Of a DNA stretch of 64,000 nt, positions 4,401 through 58,392 are shown piece by piece. How positions within the stretch are numbered: position 1 is the first letter of the stretch; each line of letters begins with the position of its first letter. The translations under genes and the position numbers were made by a program. The DNA is taken from the sequence record OQ828465.1. One strand, 5' to 3'. A model generated the notes under the pieces. The model searched no databases. It saw nothing but the letters and a program-made list of their open reading frames with translations, and was not told where the DNA came from.

Positions 4401-6434
4401 ATGAATCTTAATCGTTATAAAGCGCGTGATCTTCTAAATCTAAGTTATGATGATTTATGGTCACTCCCTTCAGAATGGCATCTAATCGAATTTGATGATG
4501 GTAAAACGGTTGTGTCAGTTGACCGTATTACCAAATTATCCGTTCTGTGTTGGTATCCTCTTAAACATTATAAAGATTGCCCAATTCCATCTGATCACCA
4601 TATCGATTTCAATCGCATCTTAACTGATAACCCTAAAGATTATCTAAATGTTGAAGGTGGCCGAGTAACATCTAAGGCCATGGTTAAGCATTTAAATAAG
4701 GCTATTTGGAACATCTATGATTGGTCAGGTGAAACAGTAGATCCTGAAGTACTATCTAAACTGGCTATTGAAGGTAAGAACTGGCTGTATAATCAGACCA
4801 CTGTGAAACTGTCTGAATATCTAGCAACCTTGTCGATGTTTGATATTGCTGAAGTATATAATCATCCCAAGGTACGTGAGGCTAACCATAATATCGAACC
4901 AACTACTTATGGTATCGAAAAAATTAGTTATGGTAAAGTCAAAGAAGTATTTAATGATCCTACCCAATTCATTGGTAACAGCATCATTGAAGGTCTTCGT
5001 TCTGGTACTCAGAAAACTGAACAGCTTCTACAAGCATTTGCTTGGCGGGGCTTTCCAACTGACATTAACTCAGATATCTTTAAATATCCGGTAACAACTG
5101 GTTATATTGATGGTATTTGGAATCTGTATGAGAATATGATTGAATCTCGTTCAGGTACTAAAGCGCTACTATATAACAAAGAACTACTGCGAGTAACTGA
5201 ATACTTTAACCGGAAATCTCAGCTTATTGCACAATATGTCCAAAGGCTACATCCTGGTGATTGTAAGACCACAATCTTAGCTGAGTATCCTGTAACTAAG
5301 TTAACTTTAAAAGCATTCAAAGGAAAATATTATCAAAAAGAAGATGGTAAACTAGACTGGATCCGTGGAAATGAAACACACCTAATTGGAACTAAACAGA
5401 AATTCAGGTCTGTATTTGGATGTAATCATCCAGATAGTCAGGGTATCTGTATGACTTGTTATGGCCGACTAGGTATCAATATTCCAAAAGGAACTAATAT
5501 CGGTCAGGTTGCTGCCGTATCGATGGGTGACAAAATTACTTCAGCAGTATTGTCTACTAAACACACCGATGCGTCTTCTGCTGTAGAACAATATAAACTT
5601 GGCAAAATTGAAAGTAATTATTTAAGAACAGGTGAAATCCCAGAGACACTATATCTAAAGAAAGAACTTACTCAGAAGGATTATCGTTTAGTAATCGCAC
5701 GGTCAGAGGCAGAAAACCTTGCTGACATTTTAATGATTGATGACCTTACTGCATATCCAGCTACTTCAGCTACTGAACTAACCAGCCTGGCCCTAGTCTA
5801 TGATGATGAGGTGAATGGTGAATGTGGTGATGTTCTGACTGTGTCGCTGTATAACCGTAGGGCTAGTCTATCTATTGAAATGCTAAAGCATATTAAGATG
5901 GTCCGTTGGGAACTAGATCAGCGAGACAATATCGTCATTAGTCTTCGTGGTTTTGATTTTAACCTACCATTCTTAACGCTACCAAATAAGCACGTAAACA
6001 TGTATGAAGTAATGAAACGATTCCAAAGTTTCTTACATTCCGGTAGTGACTCAGCCGAGGCAGGTAAACTAAGCACTGAGAAAGTTGGATATACGTCTAA
6101 AACGTATCTTAAAAACTACAAGTCACCAATTGAAGCACTACCTGTATTTGCAACAATGGCTAATGAAAAGATTAGCCTTAATATTTCCCATTGTGAGATC
6201 TTGATATACGCTATGATGATCCGTTCAGCTCAATATCGAGACTATCGCTTACCTAAACCCGGTATTAATGGCCAATTTGAAAAATATAATAGGCTAATGC
6301 AATGTCGTAGTTTAGGTGGTGCGATGGCTTTCGAAAAGCAGCATGAGCCACTAAATAACCCAGGCAGTTTCCTTAACAAGATGAGGAATGACCATCCATA
6401 TGACTTACTAGTTAAAGGTGGTAAACTGCGATAG
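4401..6434 (+). CDS. rpoC: Non-virion RNAP beta' C-terminal subunit (gp74-like)
   Basis: Zn site CNHP..GICMTCYG and trigger-loop-like NIGQVAAVSMGDKITSAVLSTKHT. Confidence 0.88.
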   Translation: MNLNRYKARDLLNLSYDDLWSLPSEWHLIEFDDGKTVVSVDRITKLSVLCWYPLKHYKDCPIPSDHHIDFNRILTDNPKDYLNVEGGRVTSKAMVKHLNKAIWNIYDWSGETVDPEVLSKLAIEGKNWLYNQTTVKLSEYLATLSMFDIAEVYNHPKVREANHNIEPTTYGIEKISYGKVKEVFNDPTQFIGNSIIEGLRSGTQKTEQLLQAFAWRGFPTDINSDIFKYPVTTGYIDGIWNLYENMIESRSGTKALLYNKELLRVTEYFNRKSQLIAQYVQRLHPGDCKTTILAEYPVTKLTLKAFKGKYYQKEDGKLDWIRGNETHLIGTKQKFRSVFGCNHPDSQGICMTCYGRLGINIPKGTNIGQVAAVSMGDKITSAVLSTKHTDASSAVEQYKLGKIESNYLRTGEIPETLYLKKELTQKDYRLVIARSEAENLADILMIDDLTAYPATSATELTSLALVYDDEVNGECGDVLTVSLYNRRASLSIEMLKHIKMVRWELDQRDNIVISLRGFDFNLPFLTLPNKHVNMYEVMKRFQSFLHSGSDSAEAGKLSTEKVGYTSKTYLKNYKSPIEALPVFATMANEKISLNISHCEILIYAMMIRSAQYRDYRLPKPGINGQFEKYNRLMQCRSLGGAMAFEKQHEPLNNPGSFLNKMRNDHPYDLLVKGGKLR

Positions 6435-6454
6435 ACGTGGAGGACGTGAGGTTT

Positions 6455-6471
6455 GGGGAGCACTGCTCCCC
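6455..6471 (+). terminator. Hairpin after the gp74-like gene
   Basis: GGGGAGC-ACT-GCTCCCC; T-run lies further downstream. Confidence 0.55.
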
Positions 6472-6492
6472 TTACCGATCGTTGATTTTTTT

Positions 6493-8031
6493 ATGAAACC
6501 GATTCTTACAGCAGAACGATACACCCATGGTGTTCGTTTATCCGGTTACGATCGGGAAACATACTTAAAGATGACTGGATATCTTAATAAACTGGTTTTA
6601 AAAGAACCTAAGAAGATACCTGGTCAACGCACCATAATGGAAATAAAGAAAAAATATTATGGTGAAACAGAAGATGGTAAATCTGTATTCATCCATCGTG
6701 AATGTCTTCAAGAACTTATTAATTATCTAGCCGATAAGAATATACCATCTACTAGAATTGAAATTGTAGATATTCCTGTACCAACAGCTGTTAAAGTAGA
6801 CTATACTTTATTTGAACATTATGTTCTAAGGGATTATCAGGAAACCATCCGCGAAGATATTCTAAGACCACATTTACATTCAGCACGTGTTGATTTACAG
6901 ACTGGTAAAGGTAAAACCTTAACTAGTTTAGCTTCAGTTGCAGTAATGAAAGAACGTGGTGTTGTTATGATTCCACCTAAATATTTCGGTATTTGGGAGA
7001 AAGCATTAAAAGAAACATTTGTTGGTTATGAAGATCAGCTAGGTATAAAATATTTAAAAGTATCTGGATCTGCTGAGTTACAGAATCTAATTAATCGCGG
7101 ACTAGAGAATGATTTAGAGGGTGTTGAAATTATTCTCATTAGTTCTACAACATACCGTGCATATATCGATACTTTTGAACGATTAGGTGAAAAAATCGAT
7201 GTAGTTGGATTTAATGTACCACCACCTAGATTCCATGAGGTTATTGGAGCAGGTTGGCAGATCAATGATGAGATTCAAGAAGATCCAGGATTAGTATTTC
7301 GTACTGATCTATATACCAATGTCAATAAACAAATCTATTTATCAGCTACTCCATACACTGGTAATCAGTTTGTTACTAAAATGATTGATGTCATGCTACC
7401 TGCCACTACAAAGTGTAGGTTACCTGCATATGACTCATACATCAATGTTATTGGCTTGTTATATAGTGAACCAACTATTAAACCTAAGGACTATTTAACT
7501 CCATTTAAAAATACATATAACCATGCTCGTTATGAAACAGTAATGATGAAGAATCCTAGGCGACTAGACTTCTATTTAAAGATGGTTAAACGTATTGTAG
7601 ATGGCGTTTATATAAAGGATCGTATTGAAGGTCAGAAATGTTTGCTATTATGCGCGACTGTAAACTTTATCGATGTACTGACAGCTTATCTTAAGAAACA
7701 ATATCCAGATCTTCAGATTAATAGACATGTTTCGGGTAGTCCGTATGATAGATTAATGACTAATGATATCACTGTATCAACTATTAAATCATCTGGTACT
7801 GGTGTTGATATTAGGAATTTAAGGGAAGTTATTCTATTACAAGCAACTGACTCTAAAAAGGACAGCATCCAAATTCTTGGACGACTAAGACCATTGAAGA
7901 ACTGGCCTGATGTAATACCAAGGTTAACATTCATGGTTTGTAATAACATACCTCATCATTGCAGATACGCTAGAAATAAAGAAAATCATTTCATGGGTAA
8001 AACTAAAAGTATGCGCATGATGCGTTTATAG
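6493..8031 (+). CDS. SF2 (UvsW-like) DNA helicase (gp75-like)
   Basis: Motifs QTGKGKT, DEIQ, SAT, QILGRLR; likely start ATG 6493 (track start 6418). Confidence 0.85.
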   Translation: MKPILTAERYTHGVRLSGYDRETYLKMTGYLNKLVLKEPKKIPGQRTIMEIKKKYYGETEDGKSVFIHRECLQELINYLADKNIPSTRIEIVDIPVPTAVKVDYTLFEHYVLRDYQETIREDILRPHLHSARVDLQTGKGKTLTSLASVAVMKERGVVMIPPKYFGIWEKALKETFVGYEDQLGIKYLKVSGSAELQNLINRGLENDLEGVEIILISSTTYRAYIDTFERLGEKIDVVGFNVPPPRFHEVIGAGWQINDEIQEDPGLVFRTDLYTNVNKQIYLSATPYTGNQFVTKMIDVMLPATTKCRLPAYDSYINVIGLLYSEPTIKPKDYLTPFKNTYNHARYETVMMKNPRRLDFYLKMVKRIVDGVYIKDRIEGQKCLLLCATVNFIDVLTAYLKKQYPDLQINRHVSGSPYDRLMTNDITVSTIKSSGTGVDIRNLREVILLQATDSKKDSIQILGRLRPLKNWPDVIPRLTFMVCNNIPHHCRYARNKENHFMGKTKSMRMMRL

Positions 8032-8483: not shown

Positions 8484-8675
8484 ATGGCTCGGGTATTGTT
8501 ATTTTTAGTACCACTATTAATTGCATTTAGTGGATTAATAACTTCAATTATATTTCTTGCTGCTGCTAAAACAATCAAACAAAAAGCAATGATTGTAAGT
8601 GGCTTGATTTGCAGTATGTTTACCCTTATGTTAGGGTTGTGGTTATTTAATATGATAATCATGCATATTAAATAG
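8484..8675 (+). CDS. Small two-TM membrane protein
   Basis: 63 aa, SD GAGGTG, two hydrophobic helices. Confidence 0.65.
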   Translation: MARVLLFLVPLLIAFSGLITSIIFLAAAKTIKQKAMIVSGLICSMFTLMLGLWLFNMIIMHIK

Positions 8676-8730
8676 ACATGCTATGTAAGAACAATTGATC
8701 ATTGTTCTCTAATAATAAGAGCATCCCACT

Positions 8731-8925
8731 ATGGTCTTTTTGTGTCAACTTATAGTAATAGCCCTTGTGGCTAGTATGGGATATAAAAGTTATCAGATTT
8801 ATCTTTATGTCAAGTTTGACTTAGATAAAGATAGTATTAAATCCCGGTATGTTCGCCAAAAGACACTGCTTGTTGTTTTATATGGCTTCTTTGCTTTATT
8901 CCCATTAGGATATCTGATGGTTTAA
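8731..8925 (+). CDS. Small two-TM membrane protein
   Basis: 64 aa, two hydrophobic helices, followed by a terminator. Confidence 0.6.
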   Translation: MVFLCQLIVIALVASMGYKSYQIYLYVKFDLDKDSIKSRYVRQKTLLVVLYGFFALFPLGYLMV

Positions 8926-49546: not shown

Positions 49547-50044
49547 ATGAACCGCATGATTCCTGCAAATGAGCGTGACAGTGAACTCAGTCTCTATGGC
49601 TATTTGACCTCTGTTGTAACTGGTGGGGTTGCTTGGGATTATAACCCTATCGTTCTGCTGGAGAAGATGTGTAATCGTGATGATGAGGCCATCTGCATGG
49701 GTGAACCCAATTACGATCAATTACGTTTGATCGGTGCAAGGGGTATGTTCGAACAGATCTCTGAAAACATCCTGTCTCGCAATGAACAAATCATGGATGG
49801 TGTTCGTGATTTCTTCAAAGATGGTCTCCAGTTGAAAACCAATGTAGATGACATGTTGGTGAGACTGAATTATCAAACTGTGCATAACGGGACTGATATG
49901 GGTGAGGTGATCATGGTAAACTTGTTCAAAAAAATTGATGGTGATTATGTGGTTGCTCATAAGTGCACATATGACCCTCAAGATTGGAAACATGCGTTAT
50001 ATTACTTCACCAATGCCTCCATGATCAGTCAAAAACAAAAATAA
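49547..50044 (+). CDS. Hypothetical protein
   Basis: Likely start ATG 49547 after GAGG (track start 49505). Confidence 0.7.
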   Translation: MNRMIPANERDSELSLYGYLTSVVTGGVAWDYNPIVLLEKMCNRDDEAICMGEPNYDQLRLIGARGMFEQISENILSRNEQIMDGVRDFFKDGLQLKTNVDDMLVRLNYQTVHNGTDMGEVIMVNLFKKIDGDYVVAHKCTYDPQDWKHALYYFTNASMISQKQK

Positions 50045-50085
50045 ATATCATGCATATCCCTTCAGGTAATTTTAGAGAGGTTAGT

Positions 50086-50361
50086 ATGAGCAATAAAGAT
50101 GTATCAATGATCCCAGTTTATGAAAATCACTTTGTCACTACTGGTGCTACTCCACGACATGAAGCAATTGTGGTATGTCGTGAATATGGTATTAATCCAT
50201 TAGATGATGCACCATTTCGGGGTTCATGGGTGATGCGCTACCGAGAGACTGGAAAATTCATTGATTGTTCCAGGGATATTGATGATTTAGCTAAGAAATA
50301 TAATCTGACCATTCATAAACCAACCATTGAATTATACACCAGCACGTATATTGGTCAATAG
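50086..50361 (+). CDS. Hypothetical protein, paralog of 48841..49092
   Basis: Likely start ATG 50086 after GAGG. Confidence 0.7.
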   Translation: MSNKDVSMIPVYENHFVTTGATPRHEAIVVCREYGINPLDDAPFRGSWVMRYRETGKFIDCSRDIDDLAKKYNLTIHKPTIELYTSTYIGQ

Positions 50362-50365
50362 AAAA

Positions 50366-50390
50366 AAACCACCCTATATAAGGGTGGTTT
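50366..50390 (+). terminator. Hairpin/terminator
   Basis: AAACCACCCT-ATATA-AGGGTGGTTT. Confidence 0.75.
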
Positions 50391-50406
50391 ATAAAAGAGG
50401 TGAAAT

Positions 50407-50670
50407 ATGCATAAACTTAATCCTGGTTGTTATCCATTAACTATAAATCCTAATGGTAAGTTTCTGAATAAAGACGATTTACGGAATCTTCCCAATGGGA
50501 TTTATGTAACTTCTCCGTTACATGGTCCTAGGGTATATAGCCATGATCGACGCGTTATGGTTGATGGTGATTATTGTTATCTAATCACTGCACCGAACAT
50601 AAAATTCAAGGTAAGTGATTTCTTTAAATATAATGTAGTTTATTATCCGAGCATTTACCTCAAGAGGTAA
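50407..50670 (+). CDS. Hypothetical protein, paralog of 51026..51253
   Basis: NLPNGIYVTSPLHGP...DRR motif. Confidence 0.7.
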   Translation: MHKLNPGCYPLTINPNGKFLNKDDLRNLPNGIYVTSPLHGPRVYSHDRRVMVDGDYCYLITAPNIKFKVSDFFKYNVVYYPSIYLKR

Positions 50671-50677
50671 TAAATAA

Positions 50678-50962
50678 ATGGCAAACGAATGCACTCCCGG
50701 TGTCTGGGATACACTAGTTGACTCGACAAAAGAAACTGAAAACCTACGTATCCGTTCCCAACTCATGCGGGCTCTCACCCGTACTATAAAGGGCTGGGAT
50801 CTTCCGCAAAAAGACGCTGCTGCTCGCCTACATGTTACGCAACCGAGATTGAATGATCTTCTCAAAGGCAAGATTGACAAGTTCTCTCTGGACGCCCTGG
50901 TAAACCTACTGGACGCGGCTGATCTGACTCTTGAGATATCAGTGATCCCACGTGCAGTATAA
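50678..50962 (+). CDS. XRE-family HTH protein, HigA-antitoxin-like
   Basis: VWDTL...LRIRSQLM...QKDAAARLHVTQPRLNDLLKGKIDKFSLDALVNLL. Confidence 0.85.
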   Translation: MANECTPGVWDTLVDSTKETENLRIRSQLMRALTRTIKGWDLPQKDAAARLHVTQPRLNDLLKGKIDKFSLDALVNLLDAADLTLEISVIPRAV

Positions 50963-51025
50963 ACCATGGGTCCGCAGCTTGATACGGCCATCGGGTGGTT
51001 TCATGACAGCAAGGAAATAAAGAAA

Positions 51026-51253
51026 ATGACAACTGATAAAAAGTTTAGTATTAAAGAACTCGGATGGGAAAAAGCCACTAATCTACCCGATGGTGAATAC
51101 TACACTATTCCTAAACATGGACCACAAAACTGGCGGTATGATCGCAAGATTATCAAAACCAAGAACAGTGTAAAACTGGTAAATGAACCAGATTATAGCT
51201 GGTCAGCCCCATTCTTTTTCGAGGCAAATAACTTGTTAATCGAAGAACCATGA
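51026..51253 (+). CDS. Hypothetical protein, paralog of 50407..50670
   Basis: NLPDGEYYTIPKHGP...DRK motif; likely start ATG 51026. Confidence 0.7.
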   Translation: MTTDKKFSIKELGWEKATNLPDGEYYTIPKHGPQNWRYDRKIIKTKNSVKLVNEPDYSWSAPFFFEANNLLIEEP

Positions 51254-51411
51254 CTATGAAACGATCACCAGGTTATTTTAAAAGAGTAGTAAAAGAACTA
51301 ACTGAGCGAGAGAACATTATACATCAGAAAGTTCTTAAATACATCAATGATAATCCGAATATTTCTTATAAAGAAGCACGTCAGATAGTAACTAAGGAGA
51401 TTATAAAGTGA
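51250..51411 (+). CDS. 53-aa basic protein (not in track)
   Basis: ATGA overlap upstream and GTGA overlap downstream; MTMKRSPGYFKRVVKELTERENIIHQKVLKYINDNPNISYKEARQIVTKEIIK. Confidence 0.7.
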   Translation: MTMKRSPGYFKRVVKELTERENIIHQKVLKYINDNPNISYKEARQIVTKEIIK

Positions 51412-51620
51412 CTATTTCAATTCCTGCATCAGTTCGTGGTGAGTTTGGAATTTATTACAAAAACAATAAGAATCTTCGCCTGGGTCAGGCATGGCATAAT
51501 TACATGCGTCTTGAAAATATCCAAAATGAAATGGATAAAGAATGGGCTGATAAACTCTGGAATGCTTCTGATAAAGAAGCAGCTGACATGGTTGATGAAG
51601 CCACTAATTGGACTATGTAA
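51408..51620 (+). CDS. Hypothetical protein
   Basis: 70 aa, GTG start after AAGGAG. Confidence 0.7.
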   Translation: MTISIPASVRGEFGIYYKNNKNLRLGQAWHNYMRLENIQNEMDKEWADKLWNASDKEAADMVDEATNWTM

Positions 51621-51659
51621 CTAAACAATATTCAATATAGTAAATAAGGAGAAATACAA

Positions 51660-51803
51660 ATGACCAATGAAGAAATTATCGCAGATGAAAGTAAATGGGC
51701 CGATGACAGTGAGGCGGTCGGCTGTGAACCAGTTGATCTGTTTATTGATTTTTACTGGGTAGAGCCCGCTCATCATACCCAAGAAGGAAAAGAGGATAAT
51801 TAA
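51660..51803 (+). CDS. 47-aa highly acidic protein (not in track)
   Basis: AAGGAG SD; 14 D/E against 2 K. Confidence 0.7.
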   Translation: MTNEEIIADESKWADDSEAVGCEPVDLFIDFYWVEPAHHTQEGKEDN

Positions 51804-51804
51804 C

Positions 51805-52080
51805 ATGGGTGAATATACACAGAATGGTATTCGTTATTTTCGTCCGGATGATACCGAAGATACCTTTTATGTCTTGGGTGATTGTTATGTGGCCAATACT
51901 ATCGCCGATATTATCAAGATGGCAACTAAGAAATGGGGTGATGGTATTACTCTTGATATGATTAATATCAGTACTGAATATATCCATACAAGTTGTCTAG
52001 GGTATGATGAGTACGACCCTAGCGATTATAGTAATTATCTATGCATCTCTCGTATTAGGGAACCATCGCTGGTTAAATAA
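51805..52080 (+). CDS. Hypothetical acidic protein
   Basis: 91 aa. Confidence 0.7.
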   Translation: MGEYTQNGIRYFRPDDTEDTFYVLGDCYVANTIADIIKMATKKWGDGITLDMINISTEYIHTSCLGYDEYDPSDYSNYLCISRIREPSLVK

Positions 52081-52093
52081 ATCAACGACATAA

Positions 52094-52115
52094 GCCCTCT
52101 CCTTCGGGAGAGGGC
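52094..52115 (+). terminator. Intrinsic terminator
   Basis: GCCCTCTCC-TTCG-GGAGAGGGC. Confidence 0.85.
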
Positions 52116-52245
52116 ATTTATTCAGTTAAACATTTAAGAATAAAAGAATTAGCCCTACTGCTGCAACAGTAGGGCTATATGCCGTTGAGTAAAAAATACT
52201 CAACATTTTCGCCCAAATGGGCTTGGATTAACAAGAGGAACCATC

Positions 52246-52551
52246 ATGTTAATTCCAGTTACCGCTAACAATGTTAGCCCTGACCTGCACAGAATGCAGG
52301 ATGTGGGTTTCTTTTTCAAGAGACCCGATGGATCAACCCATAGCATGTCAGTTGCGAAAATACACGCTGATAATGTTATCCAATGTCGAGATCGTAAAGG
52401 TCACTTCATTGGTTATTGGGCTGGTCCTACGATAGGATACGTCAACAACGCAAGTTTAGCCGTATCCATCAACCCCTTCGACAATTTCATAGTAACGGAC
52501 ACTGACATGGATCAGAAGAAGTTCTATGTAACCGAAAGGAGAAGCCTATGA
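52246..52551 (+). CDS. Hypothetical protein
   Basis: 101 aa, AAGAGG SD, structured leader. Confidence 0.75.
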   Translation: MLIPVTANNVSPDLHRMQDVGFFFKRPDGSTHSMSVAKIHADNVIQCRDRKGHFIGYWAGPTIGYVNNASLAVSINPFDNFIVTDTDMDQKKFYVTERRSL

Positions 52552-52559
52552 TAAACAAC

Positions 52560-52579
52560 CCCTCTCCTTCAGGAGAGGG
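52560..52579 (+). terminator. Intrinsic terminator
   Basis: CCCTCTCC-TTCA-GGAGAGGG. Confidence 0.8.
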
Positions 52580-52599
52580 ACTTATCTGAATTCTTTTTT

Positions 52600-53160
52600 T
52601 GTTTAAGTGAGAGCCGCCCGCTAAAGCGGCTCCCAAGTGGAGTTAAGTCTCCCGCTAAAGAGACACTCCAGTATACATGGGGTAGCGACTCCTCATGTAG
52701 ATATCCTAATTAATCTCTTTAGCTAGTAATCAATACCAGTTATCACTCGTTGATAATTGATTTGTTTATTAACTAATTTGACTTAATCAGAATAATCAAT
52801 ACATATTGTTAATAACCTAGTATATTATTACCAGTATCATTGAGTAATACTGGTAATCAAATATTACTCATGAATATTACCTAATGTGGAACTGATGAAT
52901 CGGATCGCCCCGTAGGGGCTTTTATTTCATAATAAACTATACCGAAGGTATATCCTTATTCTAATAATAAACAATATTAGCATTATTCTAATAGCGTTAG
53001 CTAATACATACTGTCTCCCTAAAAGGAGACACAGTGTAGATTATATTTTTTTTAATTAAAAAATAATAAGTCTAGAGATAGACTTTCTTTATGCCTTTAA
53101 TACCTTCTAATTTGCTCTATAATCGATTTTATTCATTATCTACTAGCATATTAGCCATAC
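52600..53160. repeat. ORF-free array of about ten inverted repeats; candidate origin or structured RNA
   Basis: Hairpins at 52611, 52638, 52674, 52740, 52827, 52907, 52938, 52988, 53012 and 53069. Confidence 0.7.
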
Positions 53161-53167
53161 GACATAA

Positions 53168-53187
53168 AAGCCCTCCTATGAGGGCTT
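53168..53187 (-). terminator. Terminator for the minus-strand dnaB-side genes
   Basis: AAGCCCTC-CTAT-GAGGGCTT. Confidence 0.75.
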
Positions 53188-53194
53188 AAATGCT

Positions 53195-53431
53195 TTATTT
53201 TTCATTAGTCGGATATAGGAGTACAATAGACTCTGCGCATACTTTAATAACTTGGATATTTTCACTGTCATTATTTTTTGATTGTTTATTTTTAACGCAG
53301 TATTCAAATTGTTGGGATTTGAGTTTATATACGTTATTGTTCTCTTCTCCCAGTATTCCTCCAAATACCAATCCTAGGATAAATATTAATAAACCACCAA
53401 TAAAGATAATATAAACATTACCATAGTACAT
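53195..53431 (-). CDS. Small membrane-anchored protein
   Basis: 78 aa, N-terminal TM helix. Confidence 0.65.
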   Translation of the reverse strand: MYYGNVYIIFIGGLLIFILGLVFGGILGEENNNVYKLKSQQFEYCVKNKQSKNNDSENIQVIKVCAESIVLLYPTNEK

Positions 53432-53432
53432 A

Positions 53433-53801
53433 TTACATTAACTCCTTTACATCATCTGGAATAGATTCACACCGATCTAAATCCCAGTAGATGTGTGTAT
53501 AGTGATCTTGGTTTACGATACTGATAAAATCCCCATTAGGATCGGGTAATGGTTTACGGATAATATCAACGTAAATAGTGTAATATAAATAAAGATCACT
53601 GATGAGTTCATCAATGTTTAAATTATTACCCTCTGCATATTTCCCATATTTAAAATAATGGGCTTCTTCTGCTACAGCATAACGGATTTTATCGTAATTT
53701 TGTGATGCGGCATATACACGTGCAAATAGAGGGCGATTAAACTTTCTACATTCACTAATATTTTTTCTTAAAGTATTTACTAAATTATCAATTGCACTCA
53801 T
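53433..53801 (-). CDS. Hypothetical protein
   Basis: 122 aa, ATAGG SD. Confidence 0.7.
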   Translation of the reverse strand: MSAIDNLVNTLRKNISECRKFNRPLFARVYAASQNYDKIRYAVAEEAHYFKYGKYAEGNNLNIDELISDLYLYYTIYVDIIRKPLPDPNGDFISIVNQDHYTHIYWDLDRCESIPDDVKELM

Positions 53802-53826
53802 TTAGATTACCTATTAAAATTATAGT

Positions 53827-53846
53827 GCTCTCCCCGAAGGGAGAGC
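53827..53846 (-). terminator. Terminator after dnaB
   Basis: GCTCTCCC-CGAA-GGGAGAGC (TTCG loop on the minus strand). Confidence 0.85.
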
Positions 53847-53855
53847 TTTATGTTG

Positions 53856-55403
53856 TTAATATCCCCAGTCATCTCCACCAGTTGCTTGCATGTTACTAAG
53901 ACTTGGTACGAAATCCATGTAATTGTTTTCTTCTTTATCGATATCCCATCTAATACCACCAATACGGTCTGGATCAAACGGCATAACAAAATAGTGATGC
54001 TTACTATCACTTACAACGTTACGGTGTTTACCACGTTGTACAGTTAGATAATACTTACCACTTACTTTAACAATGTGGAAGAAGAATTCCAGATCAGGTT
54101 CTTGCCCAAGTCGACGACAACCATCATAGTAACCTTTGTTAGCAACTTGTTTAACAAAGTCTTCTGGTGGGATATTATCCCTGATTAGTTCTAGTGCCTG
54201 AGAACTTAACTGGTGTGGACTAAAGAATGTAATACCACGTGGCGCAGTATAATTACGCATTCGCCTAAATAGGAGACGAACGTCATCACCTGCTACACTG
54301 GTTACTAATCCAGTTTTAGGCAACATGTTTAGATAATCTACGCAGAGATATTGTAGTTCATAACCACGTGCTTGATATGTATCTAGATAGTTAACTAAAC
54401 CAGCAATCGTAAATTCAGTCGGGTCAAAACGGTACATTACTGGCTCGAAACCATTTTCACGAAGACGAGCTGATACATATTCAGCTGCTTCAGCTTTACT
54501 AATGGAACTACGATCTACCTTGATACCTGTTTCATTTTCGTAAATATACTCATAAATGAAAATAAGGTTATCCGGAATCTCATTCTCAAGAGTAATAAAC
54601 ATTACTAATGGTTTCTTATTGATATCACGCATGTATGGTTTATTAAATAGACATACATGACAAAATAGACTCATAGAAACGCCAGATTTATATTGGTGTT
54701 GTAGGCCACCACCAATAATGAATTCACCACGTTTTAATGCACCTAGATCACCAAGCATACGGTTAAAGCCTTTCCATCCAGTTCGGAAAGCACCATTTGG
54801 TGAAAGAATGGTTTTAGCTTCTTCGAAGAATCCTTCAATAGAATCTAAATTACCAAAATCAAGTGCACCCATTTCAGCTGGGTGTTTCTCTTCAGCACGG
54901 GCGCGAATATATGGGTCAGCTCTGGTTGCCATTTCATTAATGATTGCCGGAATATCAGCAGAGCCTCTATTGAAAAGAATTTTTGATGAACATTCTTTTA
55001 CAATAGCTTTTACCTTTTCATCAGCTAAGTAGCTATTTAGATCACGACGATATGATGTTACACGCATAGCTAATGCCATGCCATTTGGAAATTCTTCTTC
55101 TACCGCATTTTTAACAGCATCGTATAGATAACTTTCTTCACGACAACATACTTGTAGTGATTGTAATACCTGTTGGGTAGCTGGGAAATATGTTTTCTGT
55201 TTCTTATTTAGATCCACTAGTAGATTACGAAGATCTAAAAATGTTTGCCGACCATGATCTACATCTAATGTACCACCCTTATCATTTAGAGTATCAAGAA
55301 TCTCGGTAACCAATTCATTGGATGGTTCCACAGGAGAATCTTCTCGATTTTCTAAACATAATAGAGTGATACATGAAACGAGTAATTGTTTTGGACTTGA
55401 CAT
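53856..55403 (-). CDS. dnaB: Replicative DnaB-like helicase (gp118-like)
   Basis: Variant Walker A GGLQHQYKS, ITLENE, Walker B LCVDYLNML, SPHQLS, RGKHR. Confidence 0.88.
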   Translation of the reverse strand: MSSPKQLLVSCITLLCLENREDSPVEPSNELVTEILDTLNDKGGTLDVDHGRQTFLDLRNLLVDLNKKQKTYFPATQQVLQSLQVCCREESYLYDAVKNAVEEEFPNGMALAMRVTSYRRDLNSYLADEKVKAIVKECSSKILFNRGSADIPAIINEMATRADPYIRARAEEKHPAEMGALDFGNLDSIEGFFEEAKTILSPNGAFRTGWKGFNRMLGDLGALKRGEFIIGGGLQHQYKSGVSMSLFCHVCLFNKPYMRDINKKPLVMFITLENEIPDNLIFIYEYIYENETGIKVDRSSISKAEAAEYVSARLRENGFEPVMYRFDPTEFTIAGLVNYLDTYQARGYELQYLCVDYLNMLPKTGLVTSVAGDDVRLLFRRMRNYTAPRGITFFSPHQLSSQALELIRDNIPPEDFVKQVANKGYYDGCRRLGQEPDLEFFFHIVKVSGKYYLTVQRGKHRNVVSDSKHHYFVMPFDPDRIGGIRWDIDKEENNYMDFVPSLSNMQATGGDDWGY

Positions 55404-55542
55404 TTTTATAGATTTCCAATTGTGAAATTAAGAGATGTACAGTGTATCATTTAGATAGCTAGTAATTTTAGTGAATGTATTTGCTATATTGCTATGTAGA
55501 CAGTTCCCAAAAGCCTAAAGTTACAATATAGGTACTTTCACA

Positions 55543-56076
55543 ATGACCCAAGTTCTGGTTATGCCAAAAGCTGTTTTTGAATCATATAAAACAGCAGGTG
55601 TACAATTTAACAAATTGTTAGACACCAACTATATAGTTTCCGAAACCTCCGTAAATGATCTTGCGGAGATACATCAGGCTTTAACTGCTTTCCCCTTTCT
55701 ATTACCAGAAAAACTAGATATTAAGTTAGCAGTAAGCCCGATAATTAAAGTTGCTGAGCTAGGTGAAATAGACGGTCCTGAACAATTTAAGATGAAGGAT
55801 TTACACAATCGTTTAGAGAGCCGCCTAGCGACTAATGAACTTAGGGATGCAGGTAACCGTAATTTAGTGTACGATTATTACCTATATCCTGTAGATGAGA
55901 ATCTGTGGGTTGCGGTGCAGCAGAGTGCGCACATTGCAAGTAGCGATCCTAGACGTGTCTCAATTCAACTTAACCATACTTTCTTTGATAGTATGATAAA
56001 TGAAATGTTGAACACCCGCCCACGTGAATCCGTGGCGTCAACACAAATTTTTACCTATTATTTGGAGAGCTGCTAG
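55543..56076 (+). CDS. Head-associated protein (gp119-like)
   Basis: 177 aa upstream of the major capsid gene. Confidence 0.65.
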   Translation: MTQVLVMPKAVFESYKTAGVQFNKLLDTNYIVSETSVNDLAEIHQALTAFPFLLPEKLDIKLAVSPIIKVAELGEIDGPEQFKMKDLHNRLESRLATNELRDAGNRNLVYDYYLYPVDENLWVAVQQSAHIASSDPRRVSIQLNHTFFDSMINEMLNTRPRESVASTQIFTYYLESC

Positions 56077-56148
56077 GTTGATTCCGGAAAAGATGCTTAG
56101 TAGACCCAAATTTTTAAACCAAAAACTCATCCTACGTAGGAATAAAAA

Positions 56149-58392
56149 ATGAGCGTACATGCCCTAAGAGAACTGTTTAAACACAAAGGCGAAAAGAAAT
56201 ACGAAGTCTTCTCAATGGAAGATTTCATTGGCCGCCTAGAAAGTGAAATTGGTCTAAATGACAGCATTGTTAGTCAAGGTCGTTCCCTTGTTAGCACCAT
56301 TTCACATGAAAACTTCGGTACCGTACAAGCTACCGACGTTCAAGATGCTGCTGCAATTTATAACAAAATGCAAATGCTCGTTAACGACTATGGTTTCGAA
56401 CGAGTAAGTTCCAGTGATCCTCAAGTACGTGCTCGTGAAGAACGTGTTCGTGAGAACCAGATCACTGCTGCTACCATGGCTGCTATCGCCTGTGCTGATG
56501 AAACTAAATATATCCGTGCACTACGTGGTATTACCAAAGCTAAAGCTTCTAACGAAGATCATGTTAAGGTTGTACAGCATCAGTTCAATGGCCCTGCTGG
56601 TGGTATTCAAGTATTCGAAAATGGTGTTGGCCTAGAGAACTATAACGAGAAGTCACAGCGTGATTTCCGTGTTGTAACTATTGGTTATAACCTAGCTGCT
56701 AGCCGTCAGGATGAATTCGCTGAGCGTATCTATCCGACCACCGTTATCAACCCGATTGAAGGTGGTGTTGTTCAGGTTCTTCCTTACATCGCTGTAATGA
56801 AAGACGTTTACCACGAAGTATCCGGCGTTAAGATGGATAACGAAGAAGTGAACATGGTAGAAGCCTATCGTGATCCTTCCATCCTCGACGACGAAAGCAT
56901 TGCACTAATTCCTGCCCTAGATCCGGCTGGTTCCAATGCTGACTTCTTCGTAGACCCGGCTCTTGTTCCTCCGTACACCATCAAGAACGAGCAGAACCTA
57001 ACTATCACTACTGCTCCGCTAAAAGCGAACGTACGTCTTGATCTAATGGGTAACTCCAATGCTAACCTACTCATCCAGCGTGGCATGCTTGAAGTTTCTG
57101 ACACCATTGATCCGGCTGGTCGTCTAAAGAACCTATTCGTTCTACTCGGTGGTAAAGTTGTTAAGTTCAAGGTTGACCGTCTACCTCGCGCTGTGTTCCA
57201 GCCCGATCTAGTTGGTGATACCCGGAACGCTGTTATCCGTTTCGATAGCGACGATCTAGTTGTTAGTGGCGATACCACTTTCATCGATGGTTCAGCTGAC
57301 GGTGTTATCAATGATCTTAAGACCGCTAAACTAAGCCTACGTCTAAGCGTTGGTTTTGGTGGTACAATCAGCCTATCCAAAGGCGATTCTAAGTTTGGTG
57401 CTACCGACACTTACGTCGATAAAGTTCTAAACGAGGATGGTCAGGTAATGGATAATGCTGACCCGGCTGTTAAAGCTATTCTAGATCAGCTAACTGACCT
57501 AGCGGTTATCGGTTTCGAACTAGACACTCGCTTCACCAACACTAACCGTCGTCAGCGTGGTCACCTACTACAGACCCGTGCGCTACAGTTCCGTCATCCG
57601 ATCCCGATGCACGCTCCTGTAACTCTACCGATGGACACCATGACCGATGAAGGTCCGGGTGAGGTTGTTAAAGCTCTAACTGTTAACACCAACATCCGTA
57701 ACAGCAACAACGCTGTTAAGCGCATGCTTAACTACCTTGCTCAACTACGTGAAGTTGTACACAATGGTTACAACCGTCCGAAGTTTGGTATCATCGAAGG
57801 TGCACTATCCGCTGTAATGCGTCCGACCTATCGTTACAAAGAACTAGATCTTGAGAAAGTCATCGACACCATCAAGTCTAAAGATCGTTGGGACGACGTT
57901 TGCGCTGCGATCCTAAACTGTGTTAAAGCTGAGCTATTCCCGGCTCACCGTGATTCCAACATTGAAGCTGCCTTCCGTGTTATCTCCGGTAACCAGGATG
58001 AAACTCCGATGTATCTCTTCTGCTCCGACAAAGAGATTGCTAACTATCTAATGACTAAAGGTGACGACCGTACTCTAGGTGCTTATCTCAAGTACGATAT
58101 CGTTTCCACCAACAACCAGCTATTCGATGGTAAGCTAGTTGTAATTCCGACCCGCGCAGTACAACAAGAAAACGACATCCTCTCCTGGGGTCAGTTCTTC
58201 TACGTATCTACTGTTATCGCTGACCTACCGATCACCCGTGGTGGTCACCAGGTTACTCGCGAAATCGCGGCCATTCCGTTCAACCTACACGTCAACAACA
58301 TTCCGTTCGCACTAGAGTTCAAGATCACTGGCTTCCAGAAAGTCATGGGCGAAACTCAGTTCAACGGTAAGCTTGCTGATCTTAAGCCGTGA
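56149..58392 (+). CDS. Major capsid protein (gp120-like)
   Basis: 747 aa, strong codon bias, propeptide sites SMED, SHEN, GLEN; recognised as the phiKZ-type MCP. Confidence 0.92.
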   Translation: MSVHALRELFKHKGEKKYEVFSMEDFIGRLESEIGLNDSIVSQGRSLVSTISHENFGTVQATDVQDAAAIYNKMQMLVNDYGFERVSSSDPQVRAREERVRENQITAATMAAIACADETKYIRALRGITKAKASNEDHVKVVQHQFNGPAGGIQVFENGVGLENYNEKSQRDFRVVTIGYNLAASRQDEFAERIYPTTVINPIEGGVVQVLPYIAVMKDVYHEVSGVKMDNEEVNMVEAYRDPSILDDESIALIPALDPAGSNADFFVDPALVPPYTIKNEQNLTITTAPLKANVRLDLMGNSNANLLIQRGMLEVSDTIDPAGRLKNLFVLLGGKVVKFKVDRLPRAVFQPDLVGDTRNAVIRFDSDDLVVSGDTTFIDGSADGVINDLKTAKLSLRLSVGFGGTISLSKGDSKFGATDTYVDKVLNEDGQVMDNADPAVKAILDQLTDLAVIGFELDTRFTNTNRRQRGHLLQTRALQFRHPIPMHAPVTLPMDTMTDEGPGEVVKALTVNTNIRNSNNAVKRMLNYLAQLREVVHNGYNRPKFGIIEGALSAVMRPTYRYKELDLEKVIDTIKSKDRWDDVCAAILNCVKAELFPAHRDSNIEAAFRVISGNQDETPMYLFCSDKEIANYLMTKGDDRTLGAYLKYDIVSTNNQLFDGKLVVIPTRAVQQENDILSWGQFFYVSTVIADLPITRGGHQVTREIAAIPFNLHVNNIPFALEFKITGFQKVMGETQFNGKLADLKP

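Follow-up and report, generated by a model that had tools for sequence, protein, structure and literature searches.

The giant Pseudomonas phage phiKZ makes a noncoding RNA (ncRNA) of ~180 nt, 5′UTR_gp40, which corresponds to the first 180 nt of the p40 5′ untranslated region (5′UTR) and is accompanied by a longer transcript of ~880 nt, as found by Grad-seq and Northern blot (Gerovac et al. 2021, mBio, PMC8545117). Exact RNA ends in phiKZ are given in the supplementary ONT-cappable-seq tables of Putzeys et al. (2024, microLife, PMC10914365), as follows. Minus-strand transcription starts at the middle promoter P060, with a transcription start site (TSS) at phiKZ position 114922 that was also seen by differential RNA sequencing (dRNA-seq). 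One transcription unit, TU089, runs from P060 to the 3′ end T053 at 114725, a site not called intrinsic; it is 197 nt long and contains no gene. A second, TU088, runs from P060 to T051 at 114207, is 715 nt long and spans p40 and p39. Between phiKZ 114726 and 115299, the tables contain no further TSS or 3′ end. Here we analyse the corresponding locus in 64,000 nt of sequence record OQ828465.1 (the window, whose coordinates are used below unless phiKZ is named). The locus is a hairpin-rich region at about 52552–53194, downstream of the dnaB operon and flanked by PHIKZ117.2 (p40) and PHIKZ117.3 (p41). We propose that it is probably a transcription control spacer between two minus-strand units, dnaB-p42-p41 and p40-p39.

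The window comes from a phiKZ-type Pseudomonas jumbo phage. Over a 651-nt segment spanning the region, the sequence matches several phiKZ-like Pseudomonas aeruginosa jumbo phages without a difference (100%; vB_PA32_GUMS, PhiPizzaParty and others), and its identity with phiKZ 114670–115319 is 97.8%. The offset between the two coordinate systems (window position = phiKZ minus 62120) is constant up to ~53040 and puts the P060 TSS at 52802, on the G of a TATG, and T053 at 52605, both on the minus strand. The Northern probe JVO-18831 maps to 52736–52764 with one mismatch; it is a plus-strand sequence, and the RNA it detected is therefore from the minus strand. Identity, offset and probe match together assign the locus to 5′UTR_gp40, and the sequence carries the P060 elements (52802–52852) as well as the hairpin that precedes T053 (52605–52632). 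That is, phiKZ and the window phage have the same locus on the same strand in nearly the same sequence, with the TSS motif, four stem-loops and the 3′-end site all present. Within the RNA the two phages differ at six positions, of which 52738 is the probe mismatch and 52664 restores a base pair. For the TSS, 3′ end, transcript sizes and strand, the evidence is thus published phiKZ data carried over to window coordinates.

The sequence-only reading of this DNA had favoured a replication origin or priming centre and had named a folded ncRNA as the alternative. For the left third of the region, the alternative was right. The two hairpins with the loop CCGCTAAA and the first TAGCG hairpin are the last three stem-loops of TU089, and the discrete RNA that the reading suggested looking for by TSS mapping or RNA-seq is present in the published phiKZ maps as a 197-nt minus-strand RNA at this locus. 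It is only through this alternative that the interpretation is partly supported, and the ncRNA itself is already published and not new. Two TSS candidates for it, at 52927 and ~52897, derived from TATG positions and Northern sizes, were replaced by the published TSS at 52802.

On the minus strand, 52802–52605 folds into four stem-loops (Table 1) with a free energy of -67.9 kcal/mol (z = -5.5). The plus-strand fold of the same 198-nt span has -60.1 kcal/mol, so that the minus strand is more stable by 7.8 kcal/mol. The published fold of 5′UTR_gp40 is two-stemmed (PMC8545117, PMC10914365), in contrast to the four stem-loops found here. Hairpins B and C each gain two extra G·U pairs on the RNA strand and are capped by a UAGC tetraloop within the common apex CUUUAGCGGG; on the plus strand, the G·U positions would be C·A mismatches. 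The identical 8-nt loop noticed by the sequence-only reading in hairpins 52611–32 and 52647–64, the latter enclosed by TGGAGT/ACTCCA, is confirmed, and the 9-mer CCGCTAAAG has exact copies only in these two hairpins within 64 kb. The inner stem of hairpin B carries one non-compensated change at its base, at 52664, in six strains. Hairpin A has CGCUA in its loop, which is complementary to the UAGCG that hairpins B and C display in theirs, and a loop–loop contact between A and B or C is conceivable from this complementarity. The same reading had reported loops displaying TAGCG at two places: the copy at 52683–87 is indeed in the loop of a 9-bp hairpin (hairpin A), whereas that at 52992–96 is present in the sequence but has no convincing hairpin loop.

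T053 lies 6 nt past hairpin C, has no U-tract and was not called intrinsic by ARNold. For this reason, the 3′ end may reflect non-canonical termination, RNA processing or exonuclease arrest at the hairpin. The twin CUUUAGCGGG hairpins, on which neither PMC8545117 nor PMC10914365 comments, stand where most P060 transcripts stop, and it is tempting to suggest that they form an attenuator or a factor-binding site for the unusual phiKZ RNA polymerase. Premature-termination leaders such as 5′UTR attenuators, and cis-acting antitermination RNAs such as λ nut boxB and HK022 put, offer a parallel, in that stem-loops stand in tandem in a leader that some transcripts pass but most do not, and the same apical sequence occurs in two of the hairpins. 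The likeness would be one of function only, and the polymerase here is the non-canonical phiKZ non-virion RNA polymerase.

Upstream of the RNA, the sequence has the layout of a phiKZ middle promoter. P060 is a published middle promoter (PMC10914365), and its arrangement of an A-rich stretch, TACT and TATG at -3 to +1 is common to the listed phiKZ middle promoters. A late-type promoter rule, TATG(+1), is also quoted in the phiKZ literature. Two ATATTAC heptamers on the plus strand (52860–66 and 52874–80) were considered as early promoters and rejected, the longer early motif AAAAA..TTGAGATCTATATTACTAA being absent here. A k-mer search for promoter motifs in the window was uninformative, and TATATTAC, AATATAAT and GAATAAGGA are not enriched in it.

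Overlapping the promoter is hairpin I, whose loop (52838–46, CATTGAGTA) is the exact reverse complement in PA7, 30-1, SL2 and FBPa36, a difference of five linked substitutions. From this flip of the loop between the inverted arms it follows that the arms contact each other as DNA in vivo, and that function depends little on which way the loop is turned. The second matching place returned by BLAST in some records is most likely the same hairpin, aligned on the opposite strand with its loop inverted. The promoter region has an alignable counterpart in PhiPA3, AAAAATATACT (8640–8925 in locus coordinates), after which come a 21-codon open reading frame (ORF) with a GAGGAG ribosome-binding site and then a strong hairpin with a TTTATGTCGT tail; the ORF has no phiKZ equivalent.

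The array of hairpins as a whole is real. Every hairpin named by the sequence-only reading is present, in place to within 1 nt, and its description of a long ORF-free stretch packed with inverted repeats between terminators holds. The stretch 52552–53175 is the longest in the window lacking an ORF of at least 60 aa in six frames (624 nt; runner-up 322 nt). Counting perfect hairpins (stem at least 5, loop 3–9) in 52552–53194 gave 14, against 5.4±2.0 in 500 dinucleotide shuffles, none of which reached 14; stems of at least 7 numbered seven, against 0.5, a count reached by 0/500. The triloop hairpins GCCCC-GTA-GGGGC (52907–19) and TATACC-GAA-GGTATA (52938–52), the AT palindrome and the GAGA hairpin are all confirmed, and TGTCTCC/GGAGACA (53012–31), said to resemble the second hairpin, is 80% identical to it. 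The minimum free energy of 52586–53160 has a z-score of -7.2 on the plus and -6.6 on the minus strand, compared with a mean of -0.9 (sd 1.5) for sampled 150-nt windows of the same phage; several other intergenic spots in the window fold about as strongly. A scan with Rfam covariance models gave no match at E ≤ 1 inside 52550–53200. We consider it likely that the array consists of stacked signals acting at the level of RNA, namely terminators and leader stem-loops, and that these serve the RNA polymerases of the phage itself.

The terminators are recognizable by comparison with the phiKZ motif derived from 61 sites, a GC hairpin followed by TTAT (Putzeys et al. 2024, PMC10914365). In the form used here, a GC-rich stem with a short loop is followed by the tail B-Y-TTAT-K-Y-Y-G-T. 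The hairpins at 52560–79, 52907–19 and 53168–87 each have a GC stem, a 3–4-nt loop and a TTAT-containing tail. The first, which is bidirectional, separates the ncRNA 3′ end from the start of p40, and its strain variation is restricted to loop positions 52569 and 52570; it and the minus-strand hairpin at 53168–87 form the outer borders of the region. The terminators 52907–28(+) and 53187–57(-) are an inverted pair, facing each other across 226 nt and sharing the tail GGGCTTTTAT(T/G)TC. They differ from the published motif by one extra T before TTAT, and both are missing from the published list of phiKZ 3′ ends (PMC10914365). The only mapped RNA 3′ end inside the region is T053, and the published tables have none at phiKZ 115000–115299.

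The proposed spacer would work in three steps. On the minus strand, transcription of the dnaB operon would end at the canonical phiKZ terminator 53187–53157. A 226-nt AT-rich stretch would follow, holding further hairpins and a conserved core and closed on its far side by the opposite-pointing terminator 52907–28(+); the back-to-back termination signals of the core would insulate P060 from read-through. Finally, P060 would fire at 52802, with most transcripts stopping after the four stem-loops at 52605 to give the 197-nt RNA, and a minority passing hairpin C and the bidirectional terminator at 52560–79 to give the 715-nt transcript over p40-p39. The insulating role of the facing terminators and the role of the core are the parts of this scheme that we infer. 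Beyond the known RNA, the region is ordinary transcription punctuation plus one conserved core.

The core is a 75-nt segment that can be aligned in Pawinskivirus and PhiPA3. BLAST of the window against eight Pawinskivirus-type genomes gave ~90% identity over 52914–52972 only; the DnaB proteins are ~63% identical. Within the core, the plus-strand terminator and the minus-strand UUCG hairpin face each other, and their T and A tracts (52907–28(+) and 52952–52929(-)) form the palindrome TTTATT-N4-AATAAA. The UUCG hairpin is a candidate second minus-strand terminator; read as promoter sequence instead, it would supply the TAC box of a middle-type promoter whose terminal TATG has its G at 52927. The simplest reading is that the core consists of back-to-back termination signals, which would insulate the next promoter from read-through and antisense transcription. 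The minus strand of 52953–52988 carries two GAATAAGGA-type boxes; the exact 9-mer occurs only once in the window, and similar boxes are found at similar spacing in Pawinskivirus and, in two to three copies, in PhiPA3.

The synteny of dnaB and the capsid gene is kept in Pawinskivirus (PS119XW and others), PhiPA3, D6 and RVTF4, and the spacer at this site varies in length, from ~48 nt in D6 and RVTF4 to ~420 nt in Pawinskivirus and ~800 nt in PhiPA3. Pawinskivirus does not have the left half of the element. PhiPA3 and Pawinskivirus are 85–86% identical over parts of the first ~350 nt. In alignments, the three genera have one order of elements in common. Along the minus strand, the operon terminator comes first and is followed by an AT-rich stretch that varies; next come a GC-rich hairpin, a linker holding two or three GAATAAGGA-like boxes, and another hairpin; the series ends with GTTTATTA and AAATAAAA, which two variable bases separate, and then a GC hairpin.

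In the operon terminator and in the 53012–31, UUCG and GC hairpins, the stem sequences change among Phikzvirus, Pawinskivirus and PhiPA3 while pairing stays. The stem TGTCTCC/GGAGACA of hairpin 53012–31 is GGCGATG/CATCGCC in Pawinskivirus, GGCGAGG/CCTCGCC in HPP-Temi and GCCTCCC/GGGGAGGC in PhiPA3. For hairpin 52938–52, TATACC/GGTATA in the window corresponds to AATACC/GGTATT in Pawinskivirus and GAGTTAC/GTAACTC in PhiPA3, and for hairpin 52907–19, GCCCC/GGGGC corresponds to CCTCC/GGAGG in both relatives. The operon terminators of PS119XW and PhiPA3 have different stems and the same tail, TTTATGCCGTA. Three lineages do not amount to a statistical test of covariation, but these compensatory changes have the pattern expected from selection on folding.

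HPP-Temi provides a natural exchange of the neighbour. There, a gene for a "virion structural protein" replaces the p42-type gene beside an unchanged core (498–760 in locus coordinates). The equivalent of the 53012–31 hairpin follows this different gene and has a canonical TTATTATTTCGT tail, and because of this tail it is taken to act as terminator of the replacing gene. Since the core is unchanged despite the swapped neighbour, it appears from these sequences to behave as a unit independent of the neighbouring gene. Scans for the core pattern in IMG/VR and JGI metagenomes returned only the known isolates PA7 and PhiPA3 and no new relatives, and a single-protein search for DnaB loci in IMG/VR returned PA7 only.

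Several points weigh against the spacer proposal. T053 is not a canonical terminator, as described above. The transcript data are from phiKZ and not from this isolate, and 14 variable sites separate the two within the region. With no TSS or 3′ end at phiKZ 115000–115299, the roles assigned to 52907–53157 are without direct transcript support, and there is no known plus-strand transcription for the terminator 52907–28 to stop. Moreover, the contrast in identity between core and DnaB exceeds what a terminator normally needs, and sequence conservation is high outside the core stems, in the GAATAAGGA boxes and in TCCTTATTCTAAT. Three genera of nucleus-forming jumbo phages have this short noncoding core in common, and the published transcripts offer no explanation for it.

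These points leave a minor share of likelihood, which we put well below that of the spacer, for 52929–53157 and the core being a distinct unannotated element, either a small RNA gene or a DNA site that must stay untranscribed, for example as a landing pad for proteins or a start site of replication. In a specific form, 52929–53157 would be a minus-strand unit of its own, as a small RNA ending at the UUCG hairpin and GUUUAUUAU, or as a weak middle-type promoter at ~52927 that lengthens the P060 leader; we regard this as unlikely, though worth stating. The core is laid out like the phiKZ middle promoters P014, P027 and P060 (A-rich, with TAC(T/C) ~20 nt before TATG), TACC stands at about -22 to -19 of G 52927, and in PhiPA3 the corresponding position has a true TACT. 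Conservation of the sequence itself in three genera would be more expected of a promoter than of a terminator, it is the minus strand that has the UUCG loop, and transcription from 52927 to T051 would give 841 nt, nearer to the ~880-nt Northern band than the 715 nt of TU088. However, sizes read from Northern blots are approximate, Pawinskivirus and PhiPA3 do not conserve the TATG, ONT-cappable-seq lists neither TSS nor 3′ end in phiKZ 115000–115299, and dRNA-seq is credited with P060 only.

The conserved palindromes could also be viewed as DNA. In this alternative, the core would be a cluster of operators for a phage DNA-binding protein, made up of GCCCC..GGGGC, TTTATT-N4-AATAAA and TATACC..GGTATA together with the GAATAAGGA boxes. 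All three genera retain the 16-bp palindrome TTTATT-N4-AATAAA, the boxes are repeated, the core is invariant within phiKZ-like phages, and PHIKZ114, a gene for a helix-turn-helix (HTH) DNA-binding protein, is 2 kb from the region. Yet the AT palindrome arises automatically from the T and A tracts common to two facing terminators, and the flanking stems change sequence and keep pairing, which argues for selection on folding and not on base contacts with a protein. We therefore hold an operator cluster to be very improbable.

The sequence-only reading's main proposal, an origin of replication, fares no better and is, in our estimate, the least probable of the explanations considered. It would have the AT-rich DNA near dnaB unwind, with hairpins or a promoter-derived RNA, as at T4 oriF and oriG, priming synthesis. 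Several features would suit it. The region is the longest noncoding stretch in the window, adjoins the essential DnaB-like helicase gene and drops to 19–27% GC, which places it in the lowest 0.02–0.3% of windows; facing terminators shield the stretch from transcription on both sides; the middle promoter fires into very AT-rich DNA near replication genes, a feature that recalls T4 oriF/oriG, where a middle promoter is combined with a downstream unwinding element; the inverted loop of hairpin I attests interaction of repeat arms in vivo; and no origin has been defined for phiKZ in the literature searched. But many phiKZ promoters lie in equally AT-rich DNA, the likeness to T4 is one of sequence context, and 5–8 other intergenic spots in the 64 kb are about as AT-rich, with similar hairpin-rich spots elsewhere. 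The region has no iterons or initiator-binding repeat arrays, only short two-copy direct repeats. GC skew, which the sequence-only reading had offered as a check, tracks gene orientation: the cumulative curve dips only over the minus-strand genes at 52000–58000 and then resumes. D6 and RVTF4 do without the stretch despite the same dnaB–capsid synteny, and Pawinskivirus without its left half. Finally, mapped RNA elements and canonical terminators explain most of the hairpins named. The oppositely oriented loop motifs, from which a bidirectional origin had been proposed, therefore find no support as such, and a wrong annotation of the array as a possible phiKZ origin is avoided.

A related proposal compared the GNA triloops with phage N4 signals. 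N4-type promoters are DNA hairpins with purine-centred triloops that are read by a single-subunit virion RNA polymerase. According to the literature, the phiKZ virion and non-virion polymerases are multisubunit, and the phage's early promoters consist of AT-rich duplex DNA with motifs of the type GAGATCTATATTAC; on this basis, the N4 analogy would not fit. The triloop hairpins match phiKZ's own type of terminator instead, a GC hairpin followed by TTAT.

Table 1. Features of the spacer and its flanks, in window coordinates.
Feature	Position	Strand	Description
PHIKZ117.2 (p40)	52413–52508	-	phiKZ reference annotation
Bidirectional terminator hairpin	52560–52579		CCCTCTCC-TTCA-GGAGAGGG; TTAT-containing tail on both strands
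5′UTR_gp40 / TU089	52605–52802	-	published phiKZ ncRNA, 197 nt; coordinates transferred
Hairpin C	52611–52632	-	GAGCCGC/GCGGCTC; invariant in 11 phiKZ-like genomes
Hairpin B	52638–52670	-	nested stem; apical sequence CUUUAGCGGG as in hairpin C
Hairpin A	52674–52699	-	loop CGCUA on RNA strand (TAGCG on plus strand); invariant in 11 genomes
Long AU-rich hairpin	52701–52797	-	apex is the Northern probe target
Middle promoter P060	52803–52852	-	A-rich stretch; TACT at ~-20 to -17; TATG 52805–52802, G = +1
Hairpin I	52827–52857		11-bp perfect stem, 9-nt loop; -26 to -56 of P060
Conserved core, 75 nt	52897–52972		52897–52971 invariant in 11 phiKZ-like genomes; 52972 varies
phiKZ-type terminator	52907–52928	+	GCCCC-GTA-GGGGC, then TTTTATTTC
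UUCG hairpin	52929–52952	-	TATACC-UUCG-GGTATA (stem 52938–52952), then GTTTATTAT; faces plus-strand terminator
Two GAATAAGGA-type boxes	52953–52961; 52980–52988	-	first exact, second degenerate (GAATAATGC); copies in relatives
Hairpin TGTCTCC/GGAGACA	53012–53031	-	related to hairpin B
AT palindrome and GAGA hairpin	53044–53085		palindrome 53044–53065; AAGTCTA-GAGA-TAGACTT 53068–53085; strain-variable T and A runs, indels 53045–53058
dnaB-p42-p41 operon terminator	53157–53187	-	AAGCCCTC-ATAG-GAGGGCTT (53168–53187), then TTTTATGTCGT
PHIKZ117.3 (p41)	53195–53431	-	phiKZ reference annotation
gp118, DnaB-like helicase	53856–55403	-	just beyond p41

The coding content on the left flank is ambiguous. 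Ceyssens and colleagues reportedly annotated the minus-strand unit as p40-p39, and the reference places both genes on the minus strand within 52200–52551. Neither has a Shine–Dalgarno sequence, and in the window phage, Churi, Koomba1 and ANB1 the p39 frame is interrupted by stop codons. On the opposite strand, a 101-aa ORF (52246–52551, the original gp117) is intact in 11/11 compared genomes and comes with a strong AAGAGGA site. Despite the intact plus-strand ORF, all transcripts that the published maps place in this segment are from the minus strand. Third-codon-position periodicity cannot separate the strands, as the plus-strand ORF and p39/p40 share wobble positions. BLASTP of the plus-strand ORF against the syntenic PS119XW gene found no similarity, and PHROGs matches were to phiKZ-specific families only. 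The reference annotation of p39 and p40 is doubtful, given the stops in p39 of several strains and the intact opposite-strand ORF, and the 715-nt TU088 may be largely noncoding or antisense. A 13-codon ORF (52548–52589), whose start codon overlaps the stop codon of the 101-aa ORF (ATGA) and which crosses the terminator hairpin, is probably fortuitous.

On the other flank, a 196-nt deletion (53221–53416) in SL2 and ANB1 takes out most of p41, a protein of 78 aa with a hydrophobic N-terminus, and NK1 has a p41 frameshift at 53273. The gene is thus dispensable, in agreement with per-gene counts from phiKZ transposon insertion sequencing, in which 117.1–117.4 tolerate insertions and gp118 does not.

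Three further observations concern the surroundings. At 52150–52177 there is another bidirectional-looking terminator hairpin, with linked changes near the loop between strains (52161–52166); the sole Rfam match in 50000–56000, a sub-threshold sar, is at 52147–52204, and a tRNA/tmRNA scan found none. The segment 52201–52350, around the published late TSS P059 (52336), is the strongest-folding plus-strand 150-nt window of the sample (z = -7.0). In PhiPA3, the DnaB-like helicase gene is split by ~1.8 kb (5170–7012 in locus coordinates) containing an annotated putative endonuclease gene, an insert that looks like an intron or homing element.

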